Shown here one piece after another: positions 776 through 44,597 of a stretch of DNA of 64,000 nucleotides (positions within the stretch are counted from its first letter, which is position 1; every line of letters starts with the position of its first letter). The notes under the pieces are model-generated. The model was not told the origin of the DNA and made no database searches. It was given only the letters and a program-made list of their open reading frames with translations. A program made the position numbers and the translations under genes. The DNA lies in the IMG/VR virus record IMGVR_UViG_3300014720_000001, positions 140,622 through 204,621 of that record, one strand, 5' to 3'.

Positions 776-1293
776 CGCTTCATCCCCAGTTGGACATCTT
801 CTAGGAATAAGATAGCAATATCGCTTGCGCGGCGGTAGCCCTCGCGCACACCTTTTTGATATTCGGGGTCGCCGGGTGGGGTTGTTTTCTCCGGCATATC
901 GGCAATTGTGGCTAACGCCGCAATAAACCGATTGCGAAGTTTACGGTACTCCGGCGAGTTAGTTACAACAGCGTTTTCAACAGATCTTGTCGGCGCGCAT
1001 ACGTCGGCTTCCAGCGCCGGATTTAAGCCTAATCGCTGCAGCGCCCGAGTGGCCTGCGTCAGCGCGTCAAAGTCGCGAAATGTCTGCGCTGACCGCGGCG
1101 TGTATTTCTGCGCCAGCTCGTGCAAAATCAGGCACAGGTTTGTTATTTCTAGCTCGGCTACGCCCGGCGCCTTTTTGATATTTGCCCGTTCTTCCCGTCG
1201 GCGCGCCTCGTTGCGCGTCAGCTTTACAAAGCGGTCGCGTTCTACCTTTTTCTGTACGACTTCAAAAGCGGCGACCGTTGGCGTCATGCGCAT
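772..1293 (-). CDS. hypothetical protein
   Basis: 173 aa ORF, coupled to neighbours. Confidence 0.7.
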   Translation of the reverse strand: MRMTPTVAAFEVVQKKVERDRFVKLTRNEARRREERANIKKAPGVAELEITNLCLILHELAQKYTPRSAQTFRDFDALTQATRALQRLGLNPALEADVCAPTRSVENAVVTNSPEYRKLRNRFIAALATIADMPEKTTPPGDPEYQKGVREGYRRASDIAILFLEDVQLGMKR

Positions 1294-1934
1294 CCTTTCG
1301 CGGCGGGAGTACGAACTGCGGTGGTACGAGAAACAGACGAAAACAGCTTGTAGATTTCTTCGTGCGTCGAATCAACCGGCGAATCAGCGTTGATGTGATG
1401 CACGATGCTGGCGTGCGGCCGGTAAAGCGCGTGCGTCTTGTACGCCGCCCGCATCCGATGCTGGTCTTCGATGCACCGGCGCTCGTAACGATCTGGCCGG
1501 GTATGGCCGACTGGGCGCCGCTGGCGGACGTTCTCAGGCGCTATGTCCATAAGAAAAAGAATGTCCGGGCAGAGATACGACGTCTCTCGGAAGATGTTGA
1601 TGATCAGGTCAGTCGATATGTTATTTATTTCGCCCTGATACACCAGCGTTGATAGCAACCAGCGATCACAGATCACGACATGATCTTCGGCGAGTAGCTG
1701 CTGGATATGCGCGGACAGCTCAGCCCGCGCGGCCGAGAAAAGCAGCATTTGCGCTGCCGGAGAAATAGGCGCGTCATTGTGCAGCAAGATCTGCCGAATG
1801 GCGGTGCCGATGCTCGTCGTGCCCGGGTCAGCCACAATTGTCGCGGTTATACCTTCTTTGTTTAACCGCTGTGACAACATGCGCGCCTGCGTTGTTTTGC
1901 CGGCGCCATCGATTCCTTCGAAGCAGACGAACAC
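1284..1934 (-). CDS. tmk: thymidylate kinase
   Basis: FEGIDGAGKTT P-loop, DPG.T, LLFSAAR, DRW..S..YQG motifs. Confidence 0.93.
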   Translation of the reverse strand: MFVCFEGIDGAGKTTQARMLSQRLNKEGITATIVADPGTTSIGTAIRQILLHNDAPISPAAQMLLFSAARAELSAHIQQLLAEDHVVICDRWLLSTLVYQGEINNISTDLIINIFRETSYLCPDILFLMDIAPENVRQRRPVGHTRPDRYERRCIEDQHRMRAAYKTHALYRPHASIVHHINADSPVDSTHEEIYKLFSSVSRTTAVRTPAAKGCA

Positions 1935-1948
1935 TGGAGTCCTTTCGT

Positions 1949-2266
1949 TTAGCGGCCGGTGATCTGAAAGCTGGGCGCGTCGCCAGTGATCGGCTTGGTG
2001 ATTTTGCTTTGCGTGCCGGTGATGTTGACAGTCTCACCGGGAACAGGAATGACGAGTTCCGCGGGCGGCTCGAACAGCAGCATTTCGCGACCGTCGGCAA
2101 AACGCAGCGCCAGTCCGTTCGGTGTGTGGCCGACGCCGACTACGCCTTTTGTTGCCAGCCATGTTGCCGCGTATTCACAAAACGCGCGCAGCTGATCGGT
2201 AACCAGCTCAGACTTTTTTGCTGTAAAGTCGTCAAGGATGTTATTCAACACTTCGCTTGCGGGCAT
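1949..2266 (-). CDS. hypothetical protein
   Basis: Start re-called at MPASEV (2266), preceded by AAGGAGG. Confidence 0.7.
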   Translation of the reverse strand: MPASEVLNNILDDFTAKKSELVTDQLRAFCEYAATWLATKGVVGVGHTPNGLALRFADGREMLLFEPPAELVIPVPGETVNITGTQSKITKPITGDAPSFQITGR

Positions 2267-2993
2267 AACGAACCTCCTTCTTCTTTTTTGTTGGCGCCGA
2301 TTCTTTTTCAGCGGCAGCGGCGCGTTCTCGTATCCCGGTTGTATGTTGCGCCACGAGTTTGTCAAGTTTCGCCTTATGCCGACATTCTTTGATTGCGCGG
2401 CTGACGTCACCCAACAGATTACGGGCAGCGTGCGAGAACAAGCGCAAAACATAAAAGCGCTCGGTGGCGCGCAGCGCGAGTAAATCACCGTCAAGCTGGG
2501 TAAGCAGTTTTTTGGCTTTTGGAATAGCCGTGGTGCCTCTGGCGTTGACCAGCGTCATAATATCGCGGGCCGTGCAAATGATGTCCGCGAGCACAATGAT
2601 CTGCGCGCCTACTGGGCTACCGCTGACACGCCCCCGAAACTCCATATCGCGTTTTGTCTCAACCATGCGGAAATCGCGGCTAATGTCGGCAACCATGGCA
2701 GCGACCTGAACCGTCGAAATTTCGGCAATATTCTCAAACGCGCAGGCGCTCACGTTCAGCACGTCATGGAGCAAAGCGCCCTGAATGATGGCCGAAATGC
2801 TTTCTTTGCTGTCGTCCGGAAGATAATCGGCGCGTACGTCCTGATACAACTTGTGCGCAATCGTCTCCGCCTGCTGGGCCACCTGTTTACTGTGCGCGAT
2901 TAACTCTACGCCAACAGCAGTGTGCAGATCGCGGTAGTGCTGCGCGGCAAATGTCAGTATGTGCTGCAACGGCGACTCAATTGGTTTTTTCAT
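2241..2993 (-). CDS. SpoT/Mesh1-like HD-domain protein, possibly inactive
   Basis: FAAQHY...IAHSKQVA...GALLHDVL...VAAMV...IIVLADII follows the SpoT/Mesh1 hydrolase layout; ED and HN motifs missing. Confidence 0.7.
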   Translation of the reverse strand: MKKPIESPLQHILTFAAQHYRDLHTAVGVELIAHSKQVAQQAETIAHKLYQDVRADYLPDDSKESISAIIQGALLHDVLNVSACAFENIAEISTVQVAAMVADISRDFRMVETKRDMEFRGRVSGSPVGAQIIVLADIICTARDIMTLVNARGTTAIPKAKKLLTQLDGDLLALRATERFYVLRLFSHAARNLLGDVSRAIKECRHKAKLDKLVAQHTTGIRERAAAAEKESAPTKKKKEVRYARKRSVE

Positions 2994-3010
2994 TGCATCT
3001 CCATGTGCCC

Positions 3011-4054
3011 CTATACAAGTTTAAGTAGTGTTTGCCAGCCAAGATCAAACGACTTACGCCGCGTCGAGAGGTTGTAATTCACGCGTCGATTTAAGTTATC
3101 AATATGGTTTGGCTCCGCAATCAACGCTTGTAAAGTCGTAATCAACTTTTCGTAGTCCGGGGCGGCGTGCGGAACACCGTTCTCATCGTAGTCTACGCGT
3201 GTTTTGACAAGCACGCCGTTTGCGTCTTGATACACGAAGTCAATTTGCGGCGATAGTGCAAAAGACAAAATAGGTGTACCGCAGCTAATCGAGGTCAAAC
3301 CGCAAAAACCGTAGTTGTCGCATTCGGCCGGAAAAAGCGTAAGGTCGTGCGCGGTGTACATAGCCGGTCGTTTGGCCAGCGGTACGTTGCGCACAACTTT
3401 GACGCGGCCGGCTGTCTTGCGCCCGAGCGTCTGAAAAAACTTAGCGACAGACGGCGCAAACCGGCACGACGTAATCGCAACCGTGAGCTGTGCGTCCGGC
3501 ATGCGCTCCAGCAAATAGCCGAGCAGCCCAAGAAACTGCCCGTTTGCGCAGCGAGCATTTCGGTCAAACCACGGTAAAAATATCTTTACCTGCCGGCTGT
3601 TGACGGTTTTAGTTTTCTTAGTCGCCGGCAAGCCAACGTCAAACGGAATGTAAGTGACGTTTTTAAATTTGTAGACCTTGTTAAACAATTCGCGCGATTC
3701 CGAGTTCATCGCAATCACATGATCGACGCGCTGCATAACTTTGCGAAACGGCCGCGCTAGTTCTTGCCACATCGGCACGATAATCGTGCGCACCCCAAAC
3801 CGGCGCACGTAATTCAACGTGTCAAGCTTCGGCGGCTGCGTCCAAATAATCGTGTGGCAAGTTTTAGCCCACCGCGTAAAGGGGCACTTTTTCTTGTGCA
3901 CAACCGCGCGGTCGTACGCGGTGTGCAGCTTCGCCGGGGCTGCATCTGCGTACAGTGAGCACTCGGCGCCCTGTGCGCGTAAAAAATCGGCCAGACGAAT
4001 TGCAAAGTATGCTTCGTCGCAGTGGGCGTAATGTGTATAGATACCGATACGCAT
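3011..4054 (-). CDS. glycosyltransferase, GT-B (GT4-like)
   Basis: VDHVIAMN; C-terminal HDLTLFPAECDNYGFCGLTSISCGTPIL resembles D..V.PS..E.FG....EAM..G.PV; NGVLV. Confidence 0.75.
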   Translation of the reverse strand: MRIGIYTHYAHCDEAYFAIRLADFLRAQGAECSLYADAAPAKLHTAYDRAVVHKKKCPFTRWAKTCHTIIWTQPPKLDTLNYVRRFGVRTIIVPMWQELARPFRKVMQRVDHVIAMNSESRELFNKVYKFKNVTYIPFDVGLPATKKTKTVNSRQVKIFLPWFDRNARCANGQFLGLLGYLLERMPDAQLTVAITSCRFAPSVAKFFQTLGRKTAGRVKVVRNVPLAKRPAMYTAHDLTLFPAECDNYGFCGLTSISCGTPILSFALSPQIDFVYQDANGVLVKTRVDYDENGVPHAAPDYEKLITTLQALIAEPNHIDNLNRRVNYNLSTRRKSFDLGWQTLLKLV

Positions 4055-4057
4055 TTG

Positions 4058-5977
4058 TCACTGCGCCGGGGCGCCTTGGCCGTATTGTTGCGCCATAAGC
4101 ATTGCGCCGCCTTGTGAGCGGGCCTGCTGCCGAATATCGTCGATGATGCTGGTGACGAGCGCGTGCATCGTCGAGTCGGACCGCTTGAGCTTGATTAGCT
4201 CCGAGTCTTTTACAGACTCAGGCATAGACAGCAGCTGGTTAGCAATAAGCTGCGCTTGCTGCTGTAGATCTTCCGGCGTGCGCGGTACGTTCGGCGAGTT
4301 CTGCCGCTGGGCAAGAAACTGATCGACAGGGCTGGGCGCCTGCCCGGGCATGCCGCCGGCCGGAGCTGCCCCGGGTGCGCCACCCTGCGGCATCCCTGTT
4401 GCTCCGGCACCGGTGTCACCAACACCCGCGGCCATATCGGGCGCTTGACTCATGTCTTTCATCTGCTGCGCCTGCTGCATTTCGGCCTGCATGCGCTCCT
4501 GCTCTTCCGCGTAGATCTTCTCTTCTTCGAGCATCTGCTTGATTTCGTCGCGGTAGTCCAGACCCACGCTGGAGAGGCCCGTGCTCTTGCTGATCTGCTG
4601 ACCCTGCATGAGCTGCAGCTTGGCCATCTGACGGTTGAGATCGTCAGCGTGTGTGACGCGCTGTAACTTGGCGCCCACCGGCTCCCACGACATAACGCGC
4701 GAGACAGACGACACTAACTCGCTTAAAAACAGATTGAGATTGTGCGGGAGGTGACTCCAGTTGGCCTCGAACAGCCGCAGCGCTGCCGGAGCAGCCTGTA
4801 GCGTCAGCGTCCCGTTAAATAGCTCGACGGGCATGCCAATGCACTTCAGTAACGTTTCGAGGCCCTGATCCAATAGGTCGCGCGGGGCGAGCTGCGAGGC
4901 GTCGCCGCCAAGAGCCTGATACTGCACAGGAAACGGCAGGATGTTCCAGCGCGCCGGGTCGGTTCGGCGAGCGCGAATCATCGCATTTACGCGCGCCGTA
5001 AAGCTCGACAAGTTAATTGAGTGCACCGGGTCTGACGACTGCGCGTCGCCGCCGCGGGGCATGGGCGTGATCACGCGAAACGGAATCACGTAATCGAGCG
5101 CGACAGCTTCGTTGTAGCGCTTGAGAATCTGGTAGTACCACGCTTCGCGGAAATTCGCGAGTACGCGCGAGATGCCCCAGCCGCGATTTCGCATGCCGGC
5201 CAGCGCGTCTTCTTTCAGGTGAAAGATAATGCCCTTGTCAAATAACAAATTCTGGCCGTTCTTGATCGCTTGGATAACTTCCCAGCTGGCGCGCTCAAGA
5301 TGATGAAGATGACCCTGTTTGATCAGCGTGCGATAGTCTTCAGGAATCTTCCATACGTACGAACACTCGCCGGTATAGGGATCCCACAAGATATCAATTT
5401 CGTGCGGACTCCAACGCTTGACTGTAATGTGGCCTGTGTCTCCGCTGCGTCGGTCAACGTGCTTCCACGGACCGACGTATTTGCAATTTGGGCAGGTAGC
5501 GTGAAACTGAAAGTTCTGCCACGAGAACGCGCAGGCTTCAGAATTCACGACTCGGTCCAGCGGCATTTCAAAGCCGCAGCGGGCGCAGAACAGATAGCGC
5601 CGAAACGGAACGATCAAACTAGTGAAAGAATTACCGTAGGTCATGTAATCCATGCCTACAGTTTTCAATACGTTTTGTATGCTGAGCGTGTCGGCAATGA
5701 ACGTCTGGTATTTATCTTTCTCTTCGCGGCCTGTCTTATTCTCGCCAACGTCGTAAATTTCAACGTCCGTGATGAAGTAAGACACAACGCGATCAATGGC
5801 CTGCCGATACGGGCCATTCGCGTTCATGATGTATTCTGTCCACCGTAGAGCAGTCTGAATGCTCTCCGGCATTGACAGGCTGGCTACGTCACAGAACGGG
5901 TCGGGAAATCGCTCGTCGGCTTGTACGCCGCGGCCGAGCGAGTTGTAACCCATAGAAGCAGCGGGTAAGAGCGTCAC
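4058..5977 (-). CDS. probable portal protein with CxxC/CxxC insertion
   Basis: 639 aa; AIDRVVSYFIT, DYMTYGNSF, IFHLK...RGWGIS..., Q/M/G/P-rich tail typical of portals. Confidence 0.6.
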   Translation of the reverse strand: MTLLPAASMGYNSLGRGVQADERFPDPFCDVASLSMPESIQTALRWTEYIMNANGPYRQAIDRVVSYFITDVEIYDVGENKTGREEKDKYQTFIADTLSIQNVLKTVGMDYMTYGNSFTSLIVPFRRYLFCARCGFEMPLDRVVNSEACAFSWQNFQFHATCPNCKYVGPWKHVDRRSGDTGHITVKRWSPHEIDILWDPYTGECSYVWKIPEDYRTLIKQGHLHHLERASWEVIQAIKNGQNLLFDKGIIFHLKEDALAGMRNRGWGISRVLANFREAWYYQILKRYNEAVALDYVIPFRVITPMPRGGDAQSSDPVHSINLSSFTARVNAMIRARRTDPARWNILPFPVQYQALGGDASQLAPRDLLDQGLETLLKCIGMPVELFNGTLTLQAAPAALRLFEANWSHLPHNLNLFLSELVSSVSRVMSWEPVGAKLQRVTHADDLNRQMAKLQLMQGQQISKSTGLSSVGLDYRDEIKQMLEEEKIYAEEQERMQAEMQQAQQMKDMSQAPDMAAGVGDTGAGATGMPQGGAPGAAPAGGMPGQAPSPVDQFLAQRQNSPNVPRTPEDLQQQAQLIANQLLSMPESVKDSELIKLKRSDSTMHALVTSIIDDIRQQARSQGGAMLMAQQYGQGAPAQ

Positions 5978-5989
5978 AGGCGCCTCGTG

Positions 5990-6139
5990 CTATTTAGCAG
6001 TATTTTGAACAGTGTCAGCCGCGCGTTTGCGGAAGTCACTATCAAGCGCCTGAACCTGCGCTTTCTTTTCAGCAGGCTGCGGGGCGTCCTCGTGTTCGGG
6101 AGGTGTGACGCCGGCTTTTATAACTCCACACTTTTCCAT
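5990..6139 (-). CDS. small hypothetical protein (49 aa)
   Basis: MEKCGVIKAGVTPPEHEDAPQPAEKKAQVQALDSDFRKRAADTVQNTAK; fills the gap; GAGG upstream. Confidence 0.55.
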   Translation of the reverse strand: MEKCGVIKAGVTPPEHEDAPQPAEKKAQVQALDSDFRKRAADTVQNTAK

Positions 6140-6142
6140 GGT

Positions 6143-7066
6143 TTAAGCCTCGTCGTAATTTGCGCGAATAGCACGCTCAACGAGTAAAACACAGTACTCG
6201 CGGTTATCATAAACATACTGAAATCCCGTCGTATGAACAAGGTATAGTCGGCGGTCGTCACTGATTTGTACAGCCCACGGACGCTGATATGGATCGTTTG
6301 ACGGCGGAAACCAGCGCGCGGCATTTTGTTCAAAACGCAGGTCGTAAATTAACACGATGAAACCGGCCTCCTCGATACTGTCCGGGGAGACCTGCGCAAC
6401 TGACACAATTACGTCGTGAAAAAACGCCGGAACTGTGCCAATTCCCTCTTTTTCAAAGTACAGCAGTTTTTGCGGCGGCCCGGCTTTGTGTGCGGTCGCT
6501 GCGGCTGTCGGTACCGGATTGTTGGACTGCTTTTTTAACCCAAACGCGGCCATCGGACTGTAATTGCGGTCGATCTTTTCAATGGGCGGCATGGCCGGCG
6601 GCGGATCTAACTCAGCCATCATGTCAGCCACCATTTGCTCCTCGTCGTCCTGCGTTTCAAGCGGCAGTGGCGTTGTTGCAGGCACGGGCTTTTTCGCACG
6701 CACAACAGGTACACGCTGCACGCCAGCTTTTTCCATTTTCGACAGCTCTTCAAAAACCATCGCTGCTCTCTCCCTGATGGAATTAATATCATTACCGACT
6801 ATAGCCGCTTGCGCTGTTGCAATGGCCTGTTCGACGGCTGGGCCGGTCATCTGATCCAAGGTAAGCCCGCCGACGTTTGCGCCGTTCGGATCTACAACAT
6901 TGATTTTGATCTTTGTGCGGTCGTGCGGGTTGAAATTAATCGGAATACCGCCGGGCGTCGCGGGGGCTACAATCACGCCCTTAAGCCCCTTGCTGCCGCG
7001 CATGACGTCAAGCATCGTGCGCCCGTTTTCCATGCGCTCACTCGCCGGATCGCGATAGTCAGCCAT
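6143..7066 (-). CDS. hypothetical protein
   Basis: 307 aa ORF with GGAG RBS. Confidence 0.8.
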   Translation of the reverse strand: MADYRDPASERMENGRTMLDVMRGSKGLKGVIVAPATPGGIPINFNPHDRTKIKINVVDPNGANVGGLTLDQMTGPAVEQAIATAQAAIVGNDINSIRERAAMVFEELSKMEKAGVQRVPVVRAKKPVPATTPLPLETQDDEEQMVADMMAELDPPPAMPPIEKIDRNYSPMAAFGLKKQSNNPVPTAAATAHKAGPPQKLLYFEKEGIGTVPAFFHDVIVSVAQVSPDSIEEAGFIVLIYDLRFEQNAARWFPPSNDPYQRPWAVQISDDRRLYLVHTTGFQYVYDNREYCVLLVERAIRANYDEA

Positions 7067-35001: not shown

Positions 35002-35077
35002 TAGCCGGGGTGAGATTCGAACTCACGGTCCCTAGCTTATGAGGCTAGTGAGGACGACCAGACTCCTCTACCCGGCG
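35002..35077 (-). tRNA. tRNA with CAT anticodon (Met, initiator-like features)
   Basis: Cloverleaf: anticodon arm CTAGC-CTCATAA-GCTAG, T arm GTGAG-TTCGAAT-CTCAC; no encoded CCA. Confidence 0.88.
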
Positions 35078-36143: not shown

Positions 36144-36214
36144 ATGCCCGACTAGGATTCGAACCTAGACAAAAAGAATCAAAATCTCTTGTGCTACCGT
36201 TACACCATCGGGCA
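36144..36214 (-). tRNA. tRNA-Gln (TTG)
   Basis: Acceptor TGCCCGA/TCGGGCA, anticodon loop TTTTGAT, T arm CTAGG-TTCGAAT-CCTAG. Confidence 0.9.
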
Positions 36215-38987: not shown

Positions 38988-39978
38988 GGTCGACCTTTCG
39001 TTTCTGCTGTGTCACCAAGCTACGCCCGGCTGACCGCAAGATACCAGTCCCCGCTAGTAAACGCATCCGATGCACTGCGCGCAAGTAGGCGGCTACCAGT
39101 TCGTCGTAACCGACGAGCAGCTGTTGCGGGTACCGCGTAAACTCACCAAAGATATGAAAGAAGTCAGACGCCGGTTCGTTATAGCAGTCCGAGACTTTGA
39201 TCGACTTTATGTACGTCACGCGGCTACCCCGCACCCGCACTGCCGGCAGCTTTGTCTTTGCCGCGTGCAGAAAAAACTGGCGTGCTTCAATCAACCAGCC
39301 GCCGTCTTGCGGAACTACGGCCAGCCGCCACATCGATCCAAGCACGTGCCTGTTTAATGTCTTAACGCATTTGCTGTAGGCATCGCGCTCACGCTGAAGC
39401 TCGCCCCACAACAACCGCGCGTACACACGCACTTTCTCGGGGCCGCACCCGACGCGCGGATCCCAGTCAGGCGCCGCAACAAATCGCGCTGCCACCCGGC
39501 ACGTCGCGACTAGTTTGGTGTCTTTGTTGTGCCGACCGACAGCCCGCAACTTGTGCTTGACGTCACGATACTGAGCCGCGCTGATGCGGGCATAACAAAA
39601 CGGGCAGATGTGCGCCCGGTTGCACGGACGATATACAGCTTTTCGGCGCCAACGAAAGTACATGTACGTCGGCCGGCAAAACATGCACCGTTGAAACGAC
39701 AGCCGAAACTTATCAAAGTCAAAGTCAGGTGCGTTCGAGTCGGCATTTGTACCGGTCGGAAACCAGAGCGCCCGAATGGCCAGCTCTTTTAGTTTCGACA
39801 CCCACTGCTGCCGAATCGTGTTCGTGCGGCCAGTCACCGTGTTGTGGGTCTTGGCGCCGGTCAGCCCCAGTACAAACTGCTGCACAAAAATATGCGCAGT
39901 CCGCACGCTAATCCGCCGCACTCGCCACGTCGGTATTCTGTACCGGCGAATGAACTCAGCAAACTCAATTAGTGCCAT
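38881..39978 (-). CDS. rolling-circle Rep_1-like protein with degenerate HUH motif
   Basis: C...CNRAHICPFC; G..WRL.V....GW then LIEAR where HxHxH is expected; EFTRYP; MRLLAGTGILR. Confidence 0.45.
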   Translation of the reverse strand: MALIEFAEFIRRYRIPTWRVRRISVRTAHIFVQQFVLGLTGAKTHNTVTGRTNTIRQQWVSKLKELAIRALWFPTGTNADSNAPDFDFDKFRLSFQRCMFCRPTYMYFRWRRKAVYRPCNRAHICPFCYARISAAQYRDVKHKLRAVGRHNKDTKLVATCRVAARFVAAPDWDPRVGCGPEKVRVYARLLWGELQRERDAYSKCVKTLNRHVLGSMWRLAVVPQDGGWLIEARQFFLHAAKTKLPAVRVRGSRVTYIKSIKVSDCYNEPASDFFHIFGEFTRYPQQLLVGYDELVAAYLRAVHRMRLLAGTGILRSAGRSLVTQQKRKVDHAETQKRAAQPAPAEEVRRAQAQTGTRRPTVAAET

Positions 39979-40186
39979 GCGTAGTGAGCGTCTTGGGCCG
40001 CGGCGGAATCTTACCAAACCATACCGAGCAGCCTAGCACGATAATACGCATAGCCGGCGCGCTGTGCATGCCAATTGACAAGACGTGTCCCAGCCCGACC
40101 CAATCAAACCGCACACCCCAGTACCGTTTATCAGTAACGGACAACGTAACCGTCCACGATTCATAGTTGTTAACACTGTGACTCAT
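39965..40186 (-). CDS. hypothetical protein
   Basis: 73 aa, ATGA coupling. Confidence 0.55.
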   Translation of the reverse strand: MSHSVNNYESWTVTLSVTDKRYWGVRFDWVGLGHVLSIGMHSAPAMRIIVLGCSVWFGKIPPRPKTLTTHGTN

Positions 40187-40350
40187 TTCTTCGCTTTCTT
40201 GCGGCGCTTTGGTTTAGTGGCGTTTTCCAGTTCAGTCCACAACTCTTCAACCGTAAATTGATCGCAGTCAACGGCGCGCAGAGGGACGTATCGAATCTCA
40301 TGTAGAAACTGCCGCACGAGCTTTTTCAGTTTTTTCAGTTCGGCGCTCAT
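40183..40350 (-). CDS. small basic hypothetical protein (55 aa)
   Basis: MSAELKKLKKLVRQFLHEIRYVPL...KPKRRKKAKK; GAGGA RBS; below the ORF-track cutoff. Confidence 0.6.
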   Translation of the reverse strand: MSAELKKLKKLVRQFLHEIRYVPLRAVDCDQFTVEELWTELENATKPKRRKKAKK

Positions 40351-40597
40351 CGTTTTCCTCTGTTTCGTTTACCAATCTGTCCAGCGCGGCCATATACGAA
40401 CACTCCCACTCGTGCGGCGGTTTTGCAGGATATCGCGCGTTCACGTTGTTAAGCAAATCGCTAATGGCGCCACGCAAACGCATTACCTCAGCGCGAAGTA
40501 GTACAACTTCATCTTGCGCCGCGGCTAATGCAACACCGTCAGCAAGCCATTCGCCTCTCATGCACAAATAGATGTCACCACCAAGCTCACCGCTCAT
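40298..40597 (-). CDS. hypothetical protein
   Basis: 99 aa. Confidence 0.65.
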   Translation of the reverse strand: MSGELGGDIYLCMRGEWLADGVALAAAQDEVVLLRAEVMRLRGAISDLLNNVNARYPAKPPHEWECSYMAALDRLVNETEENDERRTEKTEKARAAVST

Positions 40598-40830
40598 CGC
40601 GCATCTCCTTTTTTATTTATCCAGTTGCGCACGTCAACCGGCGGCGGATCAATAGCGTCACGCATTTTGGCGGCAAACGCGTCACACGCAGATAAAAAAT
40701 CACGAACGTGCGCGTTTACATACGGCAACGGCACGTCGATGTGATGCTCTAATTTGATTGTGCAGCGATAACCACCGACGAGCGGCAAAGATGACATCGC
40801 GATAGTTTCAAATTTTGATTCGGTGGTCAT
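40594..40830 (-). CDS. hypothetical protein
   Basis: 78 aa, ATGA coupling. Confidence 0.65.
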   Translation of the reverse strand: MTTESKFETIAMSSLPLVGGYRCTIKLEHHIDVPLPYVNAHVRDFLSACDAFAAKMRDAIDPPPVDVRNWINKKGDAR

Positions 40831-41141
40831 TGTTCATTACCTGTTTGATCTAACGCCCACCACGCACCCATCAGCGCCAAACAAATCGCGAGATATACGC
40901 TCGCAATCACCGCGCCCAGCGTGCGTGATTTTGCGCCTGCAACTGAACAGGCCACGCCGTAGGCTACCGGGTACAGCAAAGACAGCCGCAAGAACGATCC
41001 GGCCACCGCAGTTTTTAGCCACGGTGTATTTGGATTTGGCGGCGCGGCCAACCCCATAATGCCCGCCATAAAAATACCGGGATAAATGCACAACGGTAGC
41101 GCGCACAAAACCAAAACAATACCAGCAATTCGGGTACTCAC
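40827..41141 (-). CDS. small membrane protein (about 3 TM)
   Basis: Hydrophobic segments; GTGA coupling. Confidence 0.65.
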   Translation of the reverse strand: MSTRIAGIVLVLCALPLCIYPGIFMAGIMGLAAPPNPNTPWLKTAVAGSFLRLSLLYPVAYGVACSVAGAKSRTLGAVIASVYLAICLALMGAWWALDQTGNEQ

Positions 41142-41464
41142 TCATAACCTCCCGCGTGCCGCTTCAGCAGTTCATCGAGCGCTTGCGCGTCGGCCGTATT
41201 GCCAACGCGTTCAGTCAGTCGCCTTGCTCGCGCAATGACGTCCCGCTCCGCGTCGGTGAGCGCGGGCTGCGGCCTCTCGTACAGCGGCACAACCGCCATC
41301 GCATGGGCCGCAATACTTTCTGCCTCATCCCTGTTGGCCGTCACCCGATATGTAGCGCCGCCGTTCATTGAGATTGCCTCTATGGCGTTCAGCACAACCG
41401 CCCACGCCACTGGTTCGTCCACAGAACCAGTCGATGCAACAGACCGCTCATTCGTATCGCTCAT
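41138..41464 (-). CDS. hypothetical protein with LTDAER module
   Basis: EPVAWAV...PLY..PQPALTDAER; its RBS and start lie inside the attC-like site. Confidence 0.7.
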   Translation of the reverse strand: MSDTNERSVASTGSVDEPVAWAVVLNAIEAISMNGGATYRVTANRDEAESIAAHAMAVVPLYERPQPALTDAERDVIARARRLTERVGNTADAQALDELLKRHAGGYE

Positions 41465-41510
41465 GTTTGCCGCCTCCTTCGTTCGCGGCTGTTGATCTTT
41501 CGTGTTCTGT
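41421..41510 (+). mobile_element. integron attC-like recombination site
   Basis: R'' ACAGAAC-5nt-L'' GATGCAAC ... L' GTTGATC-6nt-R' GTTCTGT; single extra base in L''; inner AGACCGC/GCGGCT stem. Confidence 0.65.
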
Positions 41511-41512
41511 GG

Positions 41513-41749
41513 TCACTTCAGCCGCTCCAGTAGGCCGCGAAGGGTGGCAGGAATGGAGTCATCAAGCGGATACACGCCGATAGCAAACTCCAATGCCCGA
41601 CGCTCCCCGCGAGTGAGTCTCCCAAACTGCCGCAGGCGTTCAATCTCCTCGCGTGCTTCCTGCAAAATATTCTGCACGTCCGCTCTTGCGGCAACGCTGC
41701 TCAGCGGCATCGTTTCGGTATCGCGGATGCGGTCGATGATGTCACTCAT
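41513..41749 (-). CDS. hypothetical protein with LTDAER-like module
   Basis: DIIDRIR...EAREEIERLR...LTRGER...TLRGLLERL. Confidence 0.7.
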   Translation of the reverse strand: MSDIIDRIRDTETMPLSSVAARADVQNILQEAREEIERLRQFGRLTRGERRALEFAIGVYPLDDSIPATLRGLLERLK

Positions 41750-42525
41750 TCGCCACCTCCTTTGGTTCTCTCCAGCAGGGCGCGAAGAGTGTCTGCGTCT
41801 TGCTCTGTTTGTGTTTTCCCGTAGTCCGCCTGCAAGTAGCGAAGCGTCTCCGAAGCCCGATCAACCGCCGCACGCTCCGCGTCAGTGAGACGCAAGCGGG
41901 CAACCTCAGCCCGCAGTGATTCCACTTCTGCGATAACAGCGGGGGCCATATTTAGCACGATATGGTCGTCAGATTGCGCGACATATTTGCGAAACGTTTG
42001 CCGGTGCCACAATTCTTGCAACGCCTTTGCCGACTGAACAAACGGCGTTGACGCAGCTATGTTACCGCTGGCCTGCAATTGACCGGCGCGTTCGTACAGC
42101 AGGTCATATGCTCGCGACACCGCCTTTCGCTCCTCGTCGGTGAACTTAAGCGGCCCGGGCACAAGCATGACAGCACGCTTTTTGTCGCGCTCAATTGCCG
42201 CGGCCAATACTGCACGTTGCTCTTCGGTAAGTTCAAGTTTTAATTCGGTTGAGCAGTCGATTGTCACGTTGCCGTTGCAGACCGACAGCGTGGCATCCTG
42301 ATCGGCTAGACGGCGAATAGCCTCGCGCATCATGTAGATTTCTGGTTCAGCCGCGCGCATCCCGTGAATAAACCCAGTCGTCCAATACCATTGCGCTTGC
42401 GCTGGGCCGGCGCTATCAGCGTTTTCATACGCGCCGTCAGCAACTAGCTCGGCCCATTTGTCGTCAGCCATCTTCAATCGAACGGCGTGCTGCGCCCGTT
42501 CTTCTGGTGTTGCTGGCTTGCTCAT
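41746..42525 (-). CDS. hypothetical protein with repeated LTDAER-like modules
   Basis: Start MSKPAT with GGAGG; three L/FT..ER/QR repeats. Confidence 0.75.
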   Translation of the reverse strand: MSKPATPEERAQHAVRLKMADDKWAELVADGAYENADSAGPAQAQWYWTTGFIHGMRAAEPEIYMMREAIRRLADQDATLSVCNGNVTIDCSTELKLELTEEQRAVLAAAIERDKKRAVMLVPGPLKFTDEERKAVSRAYDLLYERAGQLQASGNIAASTPFVQSAKALQELWHRQTFRKYVAQSDDHIVLNMAPAVIAEVESLRAEVARLRLTDAERAAVDRASETLRYLQADYGKTQTEQDADTLRALLERTKGGGE

Positions 42526-42605
42526 TCGTACCTCCGAAAGAAAAAGTACATGAACGCAATAGCAATCACTGCGCCACAAACTTCGCCTACCCACGCACAA
42601 TTCAC
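42522..42605 (-). CDS. 27-aa membrane peptide
   Basis: MNCAWVGEVCGAVIAIAFMYFFFRRYE; GTGA and ATGA coupling at both ends. Confidence 0.45.
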   Translation of the reverse strand: MNCAWVGEVCGAVIAIAFMYFFFRRYE

Positions 42606-42946
42606 GTTGTCTCCTTCACAAAAATACCTTCGGGCGTCAGTGTGCCCTTGCGGTCTTTGATGGTGTTGTACGCCTCATCAAGGCAGTACGTCAGATCCAG
42701 CTGCGCGTTGTACAGCTTGACGTACAGAATCAGCGTTACGAGAACGTCGCCGATTCCGTCGATGATTCCTTCGCGATCGTTTTTGAGCGTCGCGTCAGCT
42801 AGCTCCCCTAGCTCCGACATGGTCTTGAGCAACTGCGCCATCGGGTTGCTGTTCGGGATGATCTGGCGCGCTTGGGCCCACTGAACCACGAGGCTCTGTA
42901 ATTCCGCAAACGTCCGATCCTTTTCCTCCGGCGATTCCTGCGTCAT
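42602..42946 (-). CDS. MazG-like nucleotide pyrophosphohydrolase
   Basis: QLLKTMSELGELA...DGIGDVLVTL...CL..AY..IKDRKG. Confidence 0.85.
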   Translation of the reverse strand: MTQESPEEKDRTFAELQSLVVQWAQARQIIPNSNPMAQLLKTMSELGELADATLKNDREGIIDGIGDVLVTLILYVKLYNAQLDLTYCLDEAYNTIKDRKGTLTPEGIFVKETT

Positions 42947-43391
42947 TGCGCTTCAACTCCTCGATTTCTTTCGTTAAGGCTTCGATATCCACACCGCCCT
43001 TGATCATCATGTCAATCACCGGCTGCTGCGGAAGCTGCCGGCGTTTCTTGCTGACCCAAATAACAGGACCCCATTCAGGGTTCTTCTCAAAGTGCATATA
43101 CACATCTTTGAGTTCGTCGTACGTGATATCCTCGGCGTCAGCGCAGCCCCACGCAAACATGTCATTCATGTTCAGGAAGATGCAAAACTGCTCGCGTGCT
43201 TTCTCGGGCCAGTCTTTCTCCCACCAGTGCTTGTTCATGCCGATCCAGCCATTTGCTATCAAAACGGCCAACATGCCCGGCTCTTCGTACATCTCTTCCT
43301 TGTACGGTTTGCCGGGACAACCCGTACCTTCCCAGTCCATCGTCCAGTGCGCGTCTGTTGGGTCGATGGTGTAGTTAATTTCCTTCGGCAT
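42795..43391 (-). CDS. hypothetical protein
   Basis: 198 aa; ND.FAWGCADAE motif. Confidence 0.7.
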   Translation of the reverse strand: MPKEINYTIDPTDAHWTMDWEGTGCPGKPYKEEMYEEPGMLAVLIANGWIGMNKHWWEKDWPEKAREQFCIFLNMNDMFAWGCADAEDITYDELKDVYMHFEKNPEWGPVIWVSKKRRQLPQQPVIDMMIKGGVDIEALTKEIEELKRNDAGIAGGKGSDVCGITEPRGSVGPSAPDHPEQQPDGAVAQDHVGARGAS

Positions 43392-43626
43392 TGCTGCGCC
43401 CTTTCTGCCGATCGTATGCTTCCATATCGTTCAACAGTTGTTCTTCGTGTATCGAAAAAAGTTCGAGCGCATACGCGCGCAGCTTCTTCTTCATCTCTTC
43501 GCGCTCGGGGCGCAGCAGATTAAGCAGGGCGAGAATGTTCCGCATCTCTTGCGGCGTCATCTCGCCCATTGCCAGCCTGATAGACTGCTTGTCGCCGGCC
43601 CAGATGGCTTCAAAGTCTGTAGGCAC
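43375..43626 (-). CDS. hypothetical protein
   Basis: IRLAMGEMTPQEMR motif. Confidence 0.65.
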   Translation of the reverse strand: MPTDFEAIWAGDKQSIRLAMGEMTPQEMRNILALLNLLRPEREEMKKKLRAYALELFSIHEEQLLNDMEAYDRQKGRSNAEGN

Positions 43627-43629
43627 GGC

Positions 43630-43872
43630 TCACCACGTTGGCGTCCACGTTGGCGACCACGGACCTGCCGGCCAGCTCGGCGCGTCTGGCTTGTGCGGCT
43701 GCGGGTACGGATACGACATCGGGATACGAGTGACAGCAGTCTTTACTTCGGATAGTTGCTGCTGCAGTATTTCAATCTGTACCCGCAGATGCGCTATCTC
43801 CAGCGCTAGCTGCGTCATTGGTGACGGCTTGCGGGCTTTCTTCTTCTTTGCTTTCTTGGCTTTCTTGGCCAC
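43630..43872 (-). CDS. Lys-rich hypothetical protein
   Basis: GTG at 43872 after AGGAG. Confidence 0.55.
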   Translation of the reverse strand: MAKKAKKAKKKKARKPSPMTQLALEIAHLRVQIEILQQQLSEVKTAVTRIPMSYPYPQPHKPDAPSWPAGPWSPTWTPTW

Positions 43873-44311
43873 TGATTTGCTCCTGCATCTTGGCAATCCG
43901 AGCGCGCACTAACTCGACGGCGCGCTCAACACTCTCTACTTCAACAAACGGCAGCTTGGCCTGTAGGTGCTCCCACTTGGTCGGGCCTACGCCGGCTACG
44001 TTGATCTCGCCGGGCTCTTGGCTGCCGAACTCGTCCAGCAGCGCCACGGCGGTTGCAATCTCGCGCGACGGAAACACTAGAATCTTGTTGTCGACGTCGG
44101 AGAAAAACTTCACGCCAGTACGATCGCAGATTACATAGCGCACAGCCGACTCACCAGTATCGATGTACTGCATGGCTCGCGCCTGAGTAGCGTACTGGCT
44201 TGCGTGGTTATGCGGGGCGGTTGGGCTGTGGCACGATTTAAACTTTTTGCCGCTGCCGCAAGGACACCGGTCGTTGCGCTTGATAATGCTATCTTTGCGA
44301 ATCGTGCTCAC
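43772..44311 (-). CDS. SEC-C motif protein
   Basis: RNDRCPCGSGKKFKSCH. Confidence 0.85.
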   Translation of the reverse strand: MSTIRKDSIIKRNDRCPCGSGKKFKSCHSPTAPHNHASQYATQARAMQYIDTGESAVRYVICDRTGVKFFSDVDNKILVFPSREIATAVALLDEFGSQEPGEINVAGVGPTKWEHLQAKLPFVEVESVERAVELVRARIAKMQEQISGQESQESKEEESPQAVTNDAASAGDSASAGTD

Positions 44312-44597
44312 GAAAAACCTCCGTGTTGCCGTTGAGCTGGATTAATCTCCGGCCAGTTGGACCGGGTTGGGCTATTGTCTCTTTTTCTCTCGCCTGTGCA
44401 ATACGTAGCCAGTTCAGGCGAAACTCTTCAATCGTGACCCCTTCCCGCGGCAGCAGCAGTTCAAGCGACATGCGGCACGTATTGCGCTCGTCGTCGGCCT
44501 GCATTGTGATACCGATGAGCTGCGCGTTAAACAACAGCGCAATGCCCTCCTGCAGCTGCTCTAGCGGGTCGGGGTTCGATTCAAACGGCGCCCTCAT
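44289..44597 (-). CDS. hypothetical protein
   Basis: 102 aa, ATGA coupling. Confidence 0.65.
   Translation of the reverse strand: MRAPFESNPDPLEQLQEGIALLFNAQLIGITMQADDERNTCRMSLELLLPREGVTIEEFRLNWLRIAQAREKETIAQPGPTGRRLIQLNGNTEVFREHDSQR

Follow-up and report, generated by a model that had tools for sequence, protein, structure and literature searches.

An integron-type attC site of a Pirellulales family in a 204-kb lake phage, with the translation start of a phage gene in its loop

Introduction

The present study asks why a short hairpin-forming sequence in a large lake phage should resemble the recombination site of a bacterial integron, when the genes around it run on the opposite strand and one of them takes its start codon from the hairpin loop. 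The sequence lies in a window of 64,000 nucleotides, which is the whole stretch of DNA analysed and forms part (positions 140,622 to 204,621) of IMG/VR record IMGVR_UViG_3300014720_000001, a phage genome of 204,621 bp. A preliminary description had proposed from the letters alone that the site is attC-like, that it reads antisense to the genes and carries the ribosome-binding site and ATG of one of them in its variable loop, that no integrase is present in the window, and that the phage either may use a host IntI to gain or shuffle accessory genes or retains a co-opted relic. Integrons are known as bacterial gene-capture devices, whereas attC sites in phages were reported only recently and as small clusters.

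Results

Every sequence element named in the preliminary description was confirmed base for base (Table 1). The predicted minimum-energy fold is exactly the attC-type structure on both DNA strands and as RNA, with z-scores of -2.45, -2.56 and -3.52, respectively. A scan for the same architecture, requiring a 7-bp R box with AAC/GTT, spacers of 4-7 nt, and an L box of 3 bp, a bulge and 4 bp, found this one site on both strands of the whole genome, against 0.11 per genome expected from second-order Markov simulations, and the real site has further pairs and a second bulge beyond those criteria. The site is 90 nt from R'' to R' with a 37-nt loop, within the 57-141 bp reported for attC sites (PMC3053210). 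Absence of an integrase extends from the window to the complete phage record, in which there was no PF00589 match at E<=1.

Table 1. Coordinates of the attC-type site and its neighbouring features in the window.
Feature	Position	Strand	Description
Whole attC-type site	41419-41512		Top strand is window +; recombinogenic-type bottom strand is window -, the gene-sense strand
R'' box	41421-41427	+	ACAGAAC; pairing extends to CCACAGAAC from 41419, giving 9 bp (41419-41427 with 41504-41512)
Spacer, R''-L'' side	41428-41432	+	CAGTC, 5 nt, unpaired
L'' box	41433-41440	+	GATGCAAC, with G41436 extrahelical
L'' box and stem arm	41433-41447	+	GAT, G41436, CAACAG, A41443 (second bulge), CCGC; the two extrahelical bases read C and T on the bottom strand (T-N6-C)
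Variable terminal loop	41448-41484	-	37 nt
Shine-Dalgarno sequence	41479-41473	-	AAGGAGG, in the loop
ATG	41464-41462	-	Start of the cassette ORF, in the loop
L' box and stem arm	41485-41497	+	GCGG, CTGTTG, ATC
L' box	41491-41497	+	GTTGATC
Spacer, L'-R' side	41498-41503	+	TTTCGT, 6 nt, unpaired
R' box	41504-41510	+	GTTCTGT; predicted exchange point between G41504 and T41505 (AA|C on the minus strand)
Cassette ORF	41138-41464	-	108 aa; residues 1-15 (MSDTNERSVASTGSV) encoded inside the attC
Upstream gene	41513-41749	-	78 aa; stop codon abuts the site
Further gene	41746-42600	-	284 aa
Degenerate relic-like box	41765-41770		Upstream of the neighbouring gene

The site belongs to a large family. 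An nhmmer search gave 209 hits in IMG/VR contigs, of which 136 are distinct full-length copies, in arrays of up to 10-11. The AAC and GTT triplets are near-invariant, being kept in 179 and 176 of 181 family copies, and the span is 80-83 nt. The inner helix is 96.9% paired across 136 copies with changes on both sides in nine of 13 pairs, and covariation was 0.273 against 0.109 in shuffles, with 0 of 500 shuffles as high and slid controls reaching at most a third of the score. The two bulges are T in 132/136 and C in 133/136 copies. A megablast of the 1.9-kb region against deposited phage genomes found no match, and a genome-collection scan with an 18-mer gave 20 hits, about the number expected by chance, of which only a Pirellulales MAG contig carried a full copy, while a 204,660-bp 'Nitrospirae' MAG contig of nearly the same length as the phage had none. 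A 17-mer of the 5' arm also matched an unrelated conserved coding gene in about 30 viral contigs, and these hits were set aside.

Recognition by attC covariance models was examined next. Because MAFFT misaligned the 3' arms of real attCs of unequal length, a model was seeded with three 60-nt attCs and extended by model-based alignment. The three-sequence model, R1, was too narrow, giving only 14-15 bits on two phage sites and nothing at the window site at E<=10. Model R2, built only from seven class-1 integron attCs, hit exactly 41421-41510 on the + strand only and over its full length at 27.6 bits (E 1.9e-4), while the next best hit in the window scored 11.2 bits; this is not IntegronFinder's model, but the score lies within the range of held-out real attCs (12-49 bits). 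R2 also hit about 19 sites in two phage arrays, all antisense to the genes. Reciprocally, model R3, built from the phage sites, scored the window site at 96.7 bits on the minus strand, among the best family members, and found only three places in 220 kb of integron loci, all of them true class-1 attCs on their bottom strand: dfrA14 at 28.9 bits, GES-5 at 27.3 and aac(6')-Ib4 at 17.9. Twelve 12-kb stretches beside IntI genes of an unnamed bacterial class showed no attC arrays by the architecture scan, by self-BLAST, or by R1, R2 or R3, and could not be used to train a model.

The arrays of related phages show the integron cassette signature. For 90 consecutive site pairs, the 4 nt after GTT of one site (Y) pair with the 4 nt before AAC of the next site (X) at 3.54/4, with 67/90 perfect, whereas the figure within one hairpin is 2.29/4 and permuted pairs give 2.19 +/- 0.09. 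Mutual-information mapping puts the linkage break exactly at the AAC triplet, with z 0.5-2.2 for X against spacer or stem, z 10-18 for spacer against stem, and z 16.6 for Y against the next X. The same cassette cluster has different neighbours in different phages. Nearer to the present phage, two relatives carry the site at the syntenic place with a different cassette gene (35-39% identity, against 50-76% for flanking genes), and one of them has a further site right after the cassette. Gene-content breakpoints were thus found in relatives, and with the R2 hit they support the interpretation in the preliminary description.

The family is also found in bacteria. R3 hit 45 of 151 Pirellulales genomes, in arrays of up to 26, with E 1e-8 to 1e-15. 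True IntI was present in 26 of 151 and the overlap was 19 genomes (odds ratio 10.3, Fisher p 6e-7). Family copies lie within 5 kb of intI (TIGR02249 above cut-off, or pseudogene) in nine contigs of eight genomes, for example contig C82 of Pirellulales genome G213 with an array at 1222-4520 and intI at 5564-6505, and R2 scored those sites at 13-41 bits.

Interestingly, phage and chromosomal copies differ in layout. Of 136 phage copies, 114 have an ORF of 50 aa or more starting in the loop, 92 with an SD-like motif, whereas only 2 of 19 chromosomal copies have such an ORF and none has an SD. The chromosomal cassette ORFs lie on the top strand, upstream of the attC, which is the canonical layout, whereas in phages the genes run the opposite way, and Pfam hits (DUF551, methyltransferases) confirm the coding strand in related cassettes. 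The 3' arm of the phage attC encodes residues ~9-15, and all cassette proteins therefore share an MSDxNERSVASAGS-like N-terminus. The cassette ORF of the window has no Pfam or PHROG family, but homologues of 35-47% identity head cassettes in other phages. The upstream 78-aa gene is a homologue of cassette-associated small genes, and elsewhere (L009) its homologue also ends just before a family copy, while the 284-aa gene has a C-terminal part homologous to a cassette protein of another phage (L022) with the same LTxxER...LRxLLER motifs.

Discussion

Patterns detected are best explained, with fairly high confidence, by an integron-type attC site of the family of Pirellulales (Planctomycetota) chromosomal integrons in a phage-adapted form, whose gene-sense strand, as single-stranded DNA, is predicted to fold into an R box, a 6/5-nt unpaired spacer, an L box and stem with two extrahelical bases on the same side, and a 37-nt loop. 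An integron integrase would exchange strands between the second A and the C of AAC on that strand. Related lake phages of 49-97 kb hold arrays of such cassettes in differing order, with flanks bearing the signature of exchange at G|TT, and these arrays count as CALINs (definition in PMC4889954), although the single site of the 204-kb phage, at a variable spot downstream of mazG, does not. With no tyrosine recombinase in this genome, any recombination here needs an integrase in trans, most likely the IntI of the host. That IntI is the enzyme acting in phages, that the host is a Pirellulales bacterium, and that the solo site is still active are inferences without experimental support.

The site may be compared with several known systems. 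Integron attC sites and CALINs without a neighbouring integron integrase have been reported in virulent and temperate phages, with DNA methyltransferases among the cargo as here, and IntI1 recombined 5 of 6 tested phage attCs (Qi et al. 2023, PMC9892861). That survey reported 17 CALINs, each with at least two predicted attCs and mostly with cassettes in the usual orientation, whereas the present family is large and inverted relative to its genes, exchange at G|TT is shown by comparative linkage analysis, and the bacterial source family is identified. With the attCs of Pirellulales/Planctomycetes chromosomal integrons, for which a taxon-specific model exists (Ghaly et al. 2021, PMC8352920), the length of ~90 nt, 6/5 spacers and T-N6-C bulges match. 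Class-1 attCs such as those of aadA, dfrA14, blaGES-5 and aac(6')-Ib (Larouche and Roy 2011, PMC3053210) have R''/R' boxes with AAC/GTT, a 5-nt and a 5-6-nt unpaired spacer by our hand identification, and an L box with a bulge after 3 bp and a second 6 bp further on the same side. In the phage site the second extrahelical base is C rather than the usual G, R'' and R' depart from the strict RYYYAAC/GTTRRRY consensus in the four outer bases, and there is no resistance cargo, but C-type sites are known to recombine well and T-N6-G/C is the pattern of the attCs most readily excised by IntI1, with T-N6-C sites efficiently excised by several IntIs (PMC3053210).

It is possible, though somewhat less likely than not, that phages of Planctomycetes keep an inverted, phage-specific kind of integron cassette, in which the attC at the 5' end of the gene supplies ribosome-binding site, start codon and a common ~14-residue N-terminus, and that a shared pool of methyltransferases, DUF551 proteins and many unknowns is exchanged among unrelated phages of 49-204 kb by hijacking the integron integrase of the host. 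Integrons would then serve as an accessory-gene shuffling system for viruses and not only for bacteria, and because the recombinogenic strand is the non-template strand, folding might be coupled to transcription. The phage form does show that an attC can come to carry a translation start and part of a coding sequence without losing its fold. The family also offers a lead to host assignment for this jumbo phage and dozens of other phage contigs, and a defined set of mobile phage accessory genes, likely with anti-restriction and host-takeover functions. It is interesting that cassettes of host integrons elsewhere have been reported to encode anti-phage defence systems, which raises the question whether a host IntI also shuffles the genes of its own viruses.

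An alternative that remains possible, if tentative, is that in this particular genome the site is an inactive relic, the cassette having arrived once by IntI action or by recombination with another phage, so that the site now serves only as the translation-initiation region and N-terminal coding sequence of its ORF. This is consistent with the single copy in 204 kb, the lack of an integrase, the absence of a second site or R' remnant at the far end of a cassette (the ORF stop overlaps the start of the next gene), and the degenerate relic-like box upstream of the neighbouring gene. When contigs of four other lake runs were compared over 39000-44500, no joints or loose ends appeared at the site, and contigs from three other lake samples spanned it without any alternative junction, but this is a weak test, because contigs drop rare variants, and is not evidence against activity. 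Against a relic, the site is intact in every structural feature, R'' and R' are still perfectly complementary over 9 bp, one relative has its second site right after the cassette, and variation between samples is confined to the loop, as expected if the arms are under constraint.

A second explanation, which appears unlikely, is that the element is primarily an mRNA structure, such as a translational operator or stabiliser displaying the SD and AUG in a loop, with genes shuffled by ordinary homologous recombination within the conserved 90 nt and the attC likeness due to convergence. The position of the SD and ATG, the RNA fold having the best z-score, and the lack of an integrase but presence of a UvsX-like recombinase in this phage would all fit. 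The mild excess of G-T over A-C mismatches on the gene-sense strand (22 vs 8, p 0.016) fits bottom-strand folding but would also fit an RNA structure. There is a precedent in the PeSL mobile regulatory cassettes of T4-type phages (Arbiol et al. 2010, PMC2839356; PMC4122927), which are likewise short conserved stem-loop-containing repeats between small accessory genes in plastic regions of large phages, associated with modular gene shuffling, but PeSLs are promoter-terminator motifs thought to act through homologous recombination. No sigma-70-like promoter or intrinsic-terminator-like site was found at 41400-41520, although promoters of an unknown host type are not covered by that scan, and Rfam gave nothing at the site at gathering thresholds or at E<=1. 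Moreover, homologous recombination inside the repeat predicts neither complementarity between the two flanks of a gene nor a sharp linkage break, yet both are seen at the AAC triplet; the same family, without SD or ATG and with genes on the other strand, sits beside intI genes in bacteria; and class-1 and phage models recognise each other's sites in the predicted strand sense. An RNA role may still exist as an added layer on the DNA role.

Equally doubtful is a phage-own cassette system, in which the sites are substrates of a phage-encoded Xer-like tyrosine recombinase rather than of a host IntI. All 7 near-complete (91% or more) element-bearing phage records of 49-97 kb encode one such recombinase of ~290-350 aa, and these form a single family, six copies compared (four from near-complete records, one from a partial record, plus the query) being 37-56% identical; Xer-type enzymes can probably act on folded single-stranded sites, as XerCD appears to do on CTX phage. 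However, the gene is never next to the arrays but 14-58 kb away, it fails the IntI model (18.7 bits or less against a cut-off of 265) and has no significant BLASTP similarity to IntI1, and the present phage has the site but not the recombinase. In the 151 Pirellulales genomes its homologues, present in 27, show no association with the attC family (8 of 27 carry it against a baseline of 45 of 151, odds ratio about 1). The recombinase is most simply the lysogeny integrase of temperate Pirellulales phages. Finally, a chance inverted repeat, although relaxed attC-like architecture does occasionally arise at random, is refuted by nucleotide-level conservation of the 90 nt across more than 100 copies whose flanks are unrelated, by the strong covariation, and by the reciprocal model hits.

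Genomic setting and architecture of the site

The window (bases 140,622-204,621 of a 204,621-bp IMG/VR virus record with direct terminal repeats, estimated complete) encodes a DNA polymerase, helicases, a UvsX-like recombinase, an SbcC-like protein, a MazG-like pyrophosphatase and two tRNAs, and the same DNA occurs in lake-water metagenomes. No tyrosine recombinase is detectable anywhere in the genome. The preliminary description had proposed an attC-like site on the strand antisense to the genes, with the ribosome-binding site and start codon of a gene in its variable loop, and all the bases it named were confirmed at their positions. The minimum-energy folds of both DNA strands and of the RNA are exactly the structure listed in the table (z -2.45, -2.56 and -3.52). 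A scan for this architecture finds only this site in the genome, whereas simulated genomes give 0.11 such sites each.

Positions and strands of the features described, in window coordinates
Feature	Coordinates	Strand	Remarks
R'' box	41421-41427	+	ACAGAAC
Spacer		+	5 nt, after R''
L'' box	41433-41440	+	GATGCAAC, with G41436 unpaired
Continuation of stem		+	CAACAG, a second unpaired base (A41443), then CCGC
Loop		+	37 nt; on the minus strand carries AAGGAGG and the ATG of ORF 41138-41464
Mirror arm	41485-41497	+	GCGG, CTGTTG, ATC
Spacer		+	6 nt, before R'
R' box	41504-41510	+	GTTCTGT
Outer pairing	41419-41427 with 41504-41512		9 bp
Match to class-1 attC model R2	41421-41510	+	whole length of the model
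Differences in a contig from one other lake sample (X8)	41454-41468		seven positions, all inside the attC loop
ORF starting in the loop	41138-41464	-	108-aa protein; its stop overlaps the next start
Stop of the upstream gene	41513-41515		abuts the site
Upstream gene	41513-41749	-	78 aa
Region upstream of the 78-aa gene	41750-41775	-	GAGAAC at 41770-41765
Three consecutive genes	41138-42600	-	108, 78 and 284 aa
Stretch collinear with relative L075	48957-42602		up to mazG
ORF with SEC-C-type motif	43772-44311	-	motif stretch at 44238-44284
tRNA genes	35002-35077 and 36144-36214	-	within a ~6-kb block
Block absent from relative L097	34693-40827

A family of related sites in phages

Homologues of the 108-aa protein in other viral contigs are only 35-47% identical overall, yet the ~95 nt from 48 nt upstream of the ATG to codon 15 are almost identical at the nucleotide level while the flanks are unrelated. 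Pattern scans and an iterated nhmmer profile gave 209 hits, of which 136 are distinct full-length copies, and many contigs hold arrays of up to 10-11 copies, 240-1,500 nt apart and all on the gene strand. AAC is kept in 179 and GTT in 176 of 181 aligned copies, and the AAC-to-GTT span is 80-83 nt. The 17-mer GATCAACAGCCGCGAAC of the 5' arm also occurs in a highly conserved coding gene (translation ...INSRELRQQLKRDELLPKYLDYVQRYRDSGL...) of an unrelated group of viral contigs (L018, L024, L026 and about 30 further viral loci), but this is a coincidental match and not part of the family.

The structure is under selection. On an alignment of the 136 copies, the 13-bp inner helix is paired in 96.9% of cells, nine of its 13 pairs show changes on both sides, and whole arm sequences are swapped for complementary alternatives. 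The covariation score is 0.273, against 0.109 +/- 0.006 in shuffles (0 of 500 as high) and at most 0.086 when partners are slid. The two bulges are T in 132 and C in 133 of 136 copies, always 6 bp apart on the 3' arm of the gene-sense strand, and T-N6-C variants are excised as well or better by IntI1, IntI3, IntI2*179E and SonIntIA (PMC3053210). In this orientation the window + strand is the top strand and the gene-sense strand is the bottom strand.

Interestingly, the four to six bases beyond AAC and GTT are often not complementary within one hairpin (2.29 of 4, equal to permuted pairs at 2.19 +/- 0.09), but the bases after GTT of site n are complementary to the bases before AAC of site n+1 (3.54 of 4; 67 of 90 perfect; 51 of 90 run to 5-6 nt). 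Each gene is therefore flanked by its own inverted repeat, which is what integron cassettes show, because exchange takes place at G|TT and splits R' between neighbouring cassettes. Mutual-information mapping places the break precisely: the bases before AAC are unlinked to the spacer and stem that follow (z 0.5-2.2), spacer and stem are tightly linked to each other (z 10-18), and the bases after GTT are linked to the next site's upstream bases (z 16.6) but not to its spacer or stem (z about 0). Homologous cassette genes occur between different neighbours in different phages, where they keep their own stem type and downstream box, but not the upstream box.

Comparison with class-1 integron attC sites

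Class-1 integron arrays were taken from six plasmids and their attCs were located by hand downstream of annotated cassette genes. They show the same layout, with a 7-nt R'', a 5-nt spacer, 3 bp, a bulge and then the stem, followed by a 7-nt L', a 5-6-nt spacer and R'. A covariance model of three 60-nt attCs (R1) recovered other real attCs but was too narrow for the phage sites. A model of seven attCs (R2), run without filters, hit the window site at 27.6 bits (E 1.9e-4), with the next best hit in the 64-kb window scoring 11.2 bits. R2 also hit about 19 sites of two phage arrays, always on the strand antisense to the genes. Conversely, a model of the phage sites (R3) searched against 220 kb of integron loci returned three hits, all of them true class-1 attCs on their bottom strand: dfrA14 at 28.9 bits, GES-5 at 27.3 and aac(6')-Ib4 at 17.9.

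Scores of model R2 on real attC sites left out of its training
Held-out real attC	R2 score (bits)
blaGES-5	49.2
qacG2	46.6
aac(6')-Iae	27.0
unannotated site	24.3
dfrA14	14.1
blaIMP	12.1

The family in Pirellulales genomes

One full copy lay on a small contig of a Pirellulales MAG that also encodes a true integron integrase, and R3 then found 12 copies in that MAG. Among 151 sampled Pirellulales genomes, R3 found copies in 45, with arrays of up to 26. True IntI (TIGR02249 above cut-off or near it) is present in 26 of the same 151 genomes, and 19 of those carry the family (odds ratio 10.3, p 6e-7). In nine contigs of eight genomes, copies lie within 5 kb of intI or an intI pseudogene, as for example in contig G213:C82, with an array at 1222-4520 and intI at 5564-6505. 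R2 scores these chromosomal sites 13-41 bits on the strand opposite to R3. Planctomycetes are already known to have a taxon-specific attC type (PMC8352920), and the window site is thus a member of a bona fide integron attC family. It is interesting that in G213:C82 and in a second contig, G327:C230, intI reads towards the array on the same strand as the cassette genes, the "inverted integrase" arrangement, while in G327:C155 intI and the array are divergent, the classical arrangement; both use the same attC family, and the two occur within one genome (G327). By contrast, in an unnamed bacterial class in which 33 of 182 genomes encode a true IntI above the curated cut-off, no attC was detectable by any of the three models in 12-kb stretches on the expected side of 12 of these genes. 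Either the arrays lie on the other side or their attCs are very different.

In the chromosomal arrays, the ORFs that fill the cassettes lie on the top strand and end just before the attC, which is the canonical layout. Only 2 of 19 sites have an ORF of 50 codons or more starting in the loop on the bottom strand, none with a Shine-Dalgarno motif, whereas in phage contigs 114 of 136 do, 92 with such a motif. The coding strand in phages is confirmed by Pfam matches of the translations, which comprise DUF551 in 10 of 108, four DNA methyltransferases of three Pfam families, and an HNH protein, with no family match for the rest. All these proteins begin with the same ~14 residues, encoded by the 3' arm of the attC. 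The phage form is therefore an inverted cassette in which the attC doubles as translation-initiation region and N-terminal coding sequence. The interpretation of the site as an integron attC is supported, in a form adapted to phages. Clusters of attC sites in phages have been published (PMC9892861), but we found no description of the inverted layout with the translation start inside the attC, of the size of this family, of its link to Pirellulales integrons, or of proof of exchange at the canonical point, which here, as with all our evidence for recombination, is comparative and obtained without raw reads.

Candidate recombinases

A host IntI acting in trans, as suggested in the preliminary description, is the best candidate for the enzyme, although this step is inferred. 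IntI-mediated insertion of cassettes outside att sites has been reported in bacteria (bioRxiv 10.1101/2022.09.11.507474), and this could explain solo sites. An alternative could be the Xer-like tyrosine recombinase of about 290-350 aa, one of which is encoded by each of the seven near-complete array-bearing phage genomes (49-97 kb), the six copies compared belonging to a single family. However, the gene lies 14-58 kb from the arrays, it fails the IntI model and has no significant similarity to IntI1, and in the 151 Pirellulales genomes its homologues (27 genomes) show no association with the attC family (8 of 27, equal to the baseline). It is most simply the lysogeny integrase of temperate Pirellulales phages, which in turn supports that host assignment. 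Also supporting Pirellulales as the host group is a 42.8-kb contig of a Pirellulales MAG (G008:C24), which has family copies at both ends and a homologue of the phage Xer-like recombinase (36% identity) and is probably a phage or prophage genome whose assembly broke in its cassette array.

The site in this genome and its surroundings

The window site is the only copy in 204 kb. Of two relatives of this phage, L075 is collinear with bases 48957-42602 of the window up to mazG and then has different small genes, a family copy with a cassette gene 39% identical to the window's, and the start of a second copy. The other, L097, begins inside a copy, its cassette is 35% identical to the window's, and it has 1.6 kb not present in the window before the conserved membrane-protein gene. 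The site is thus at a conserved position in a variable region, and gene content differs on both sides. The solo site may or may not still be recombined. In the window no R' remnant marks the far end of a cassette. Contigs from three other lake samples span the site unchanged and a fourth differs only in the loop; in the X8 contig the differences fall in codons 2-4 and the SD-ATG spacer, and the arms are identical.

Upstream of the 78-aa gene, GAGAAC on the minus strand is followed directly by an SD and start region, CAAAGGAGGTGGCGAATGAGTGAC, which closely resembles the family's AAC box joined to its loop, as if the 5' arm had been deleted between two GAAC repeats. It may be a decayed second attC, which would make the three consecutive genes an old cassette array. 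The 108-, 78- and 284-aa proteins and many cassette proteins of other viral loci (L019-L099) share short motifs, VPLYRxPxPTLTDxEREAI and a C-terminal LRGLLERxx, while another group shares EIERLREAIRRLADQDATLSV; no Pfam or PHROG family covers them. Elsewhere in the window, about 45 nt have roughly 20-fold higher contig depth in four lake metagenomes, with loose ends on both sides, but this stretch encodes a SEC-C-type metal-binding motif (CPCGSGKKFKSC) shared by many unrelated genes and is not a repeat element. Finally, the two tRNA genes lie in a block that is absent from L097, where the homologues of the two flanking genes are adjacent.
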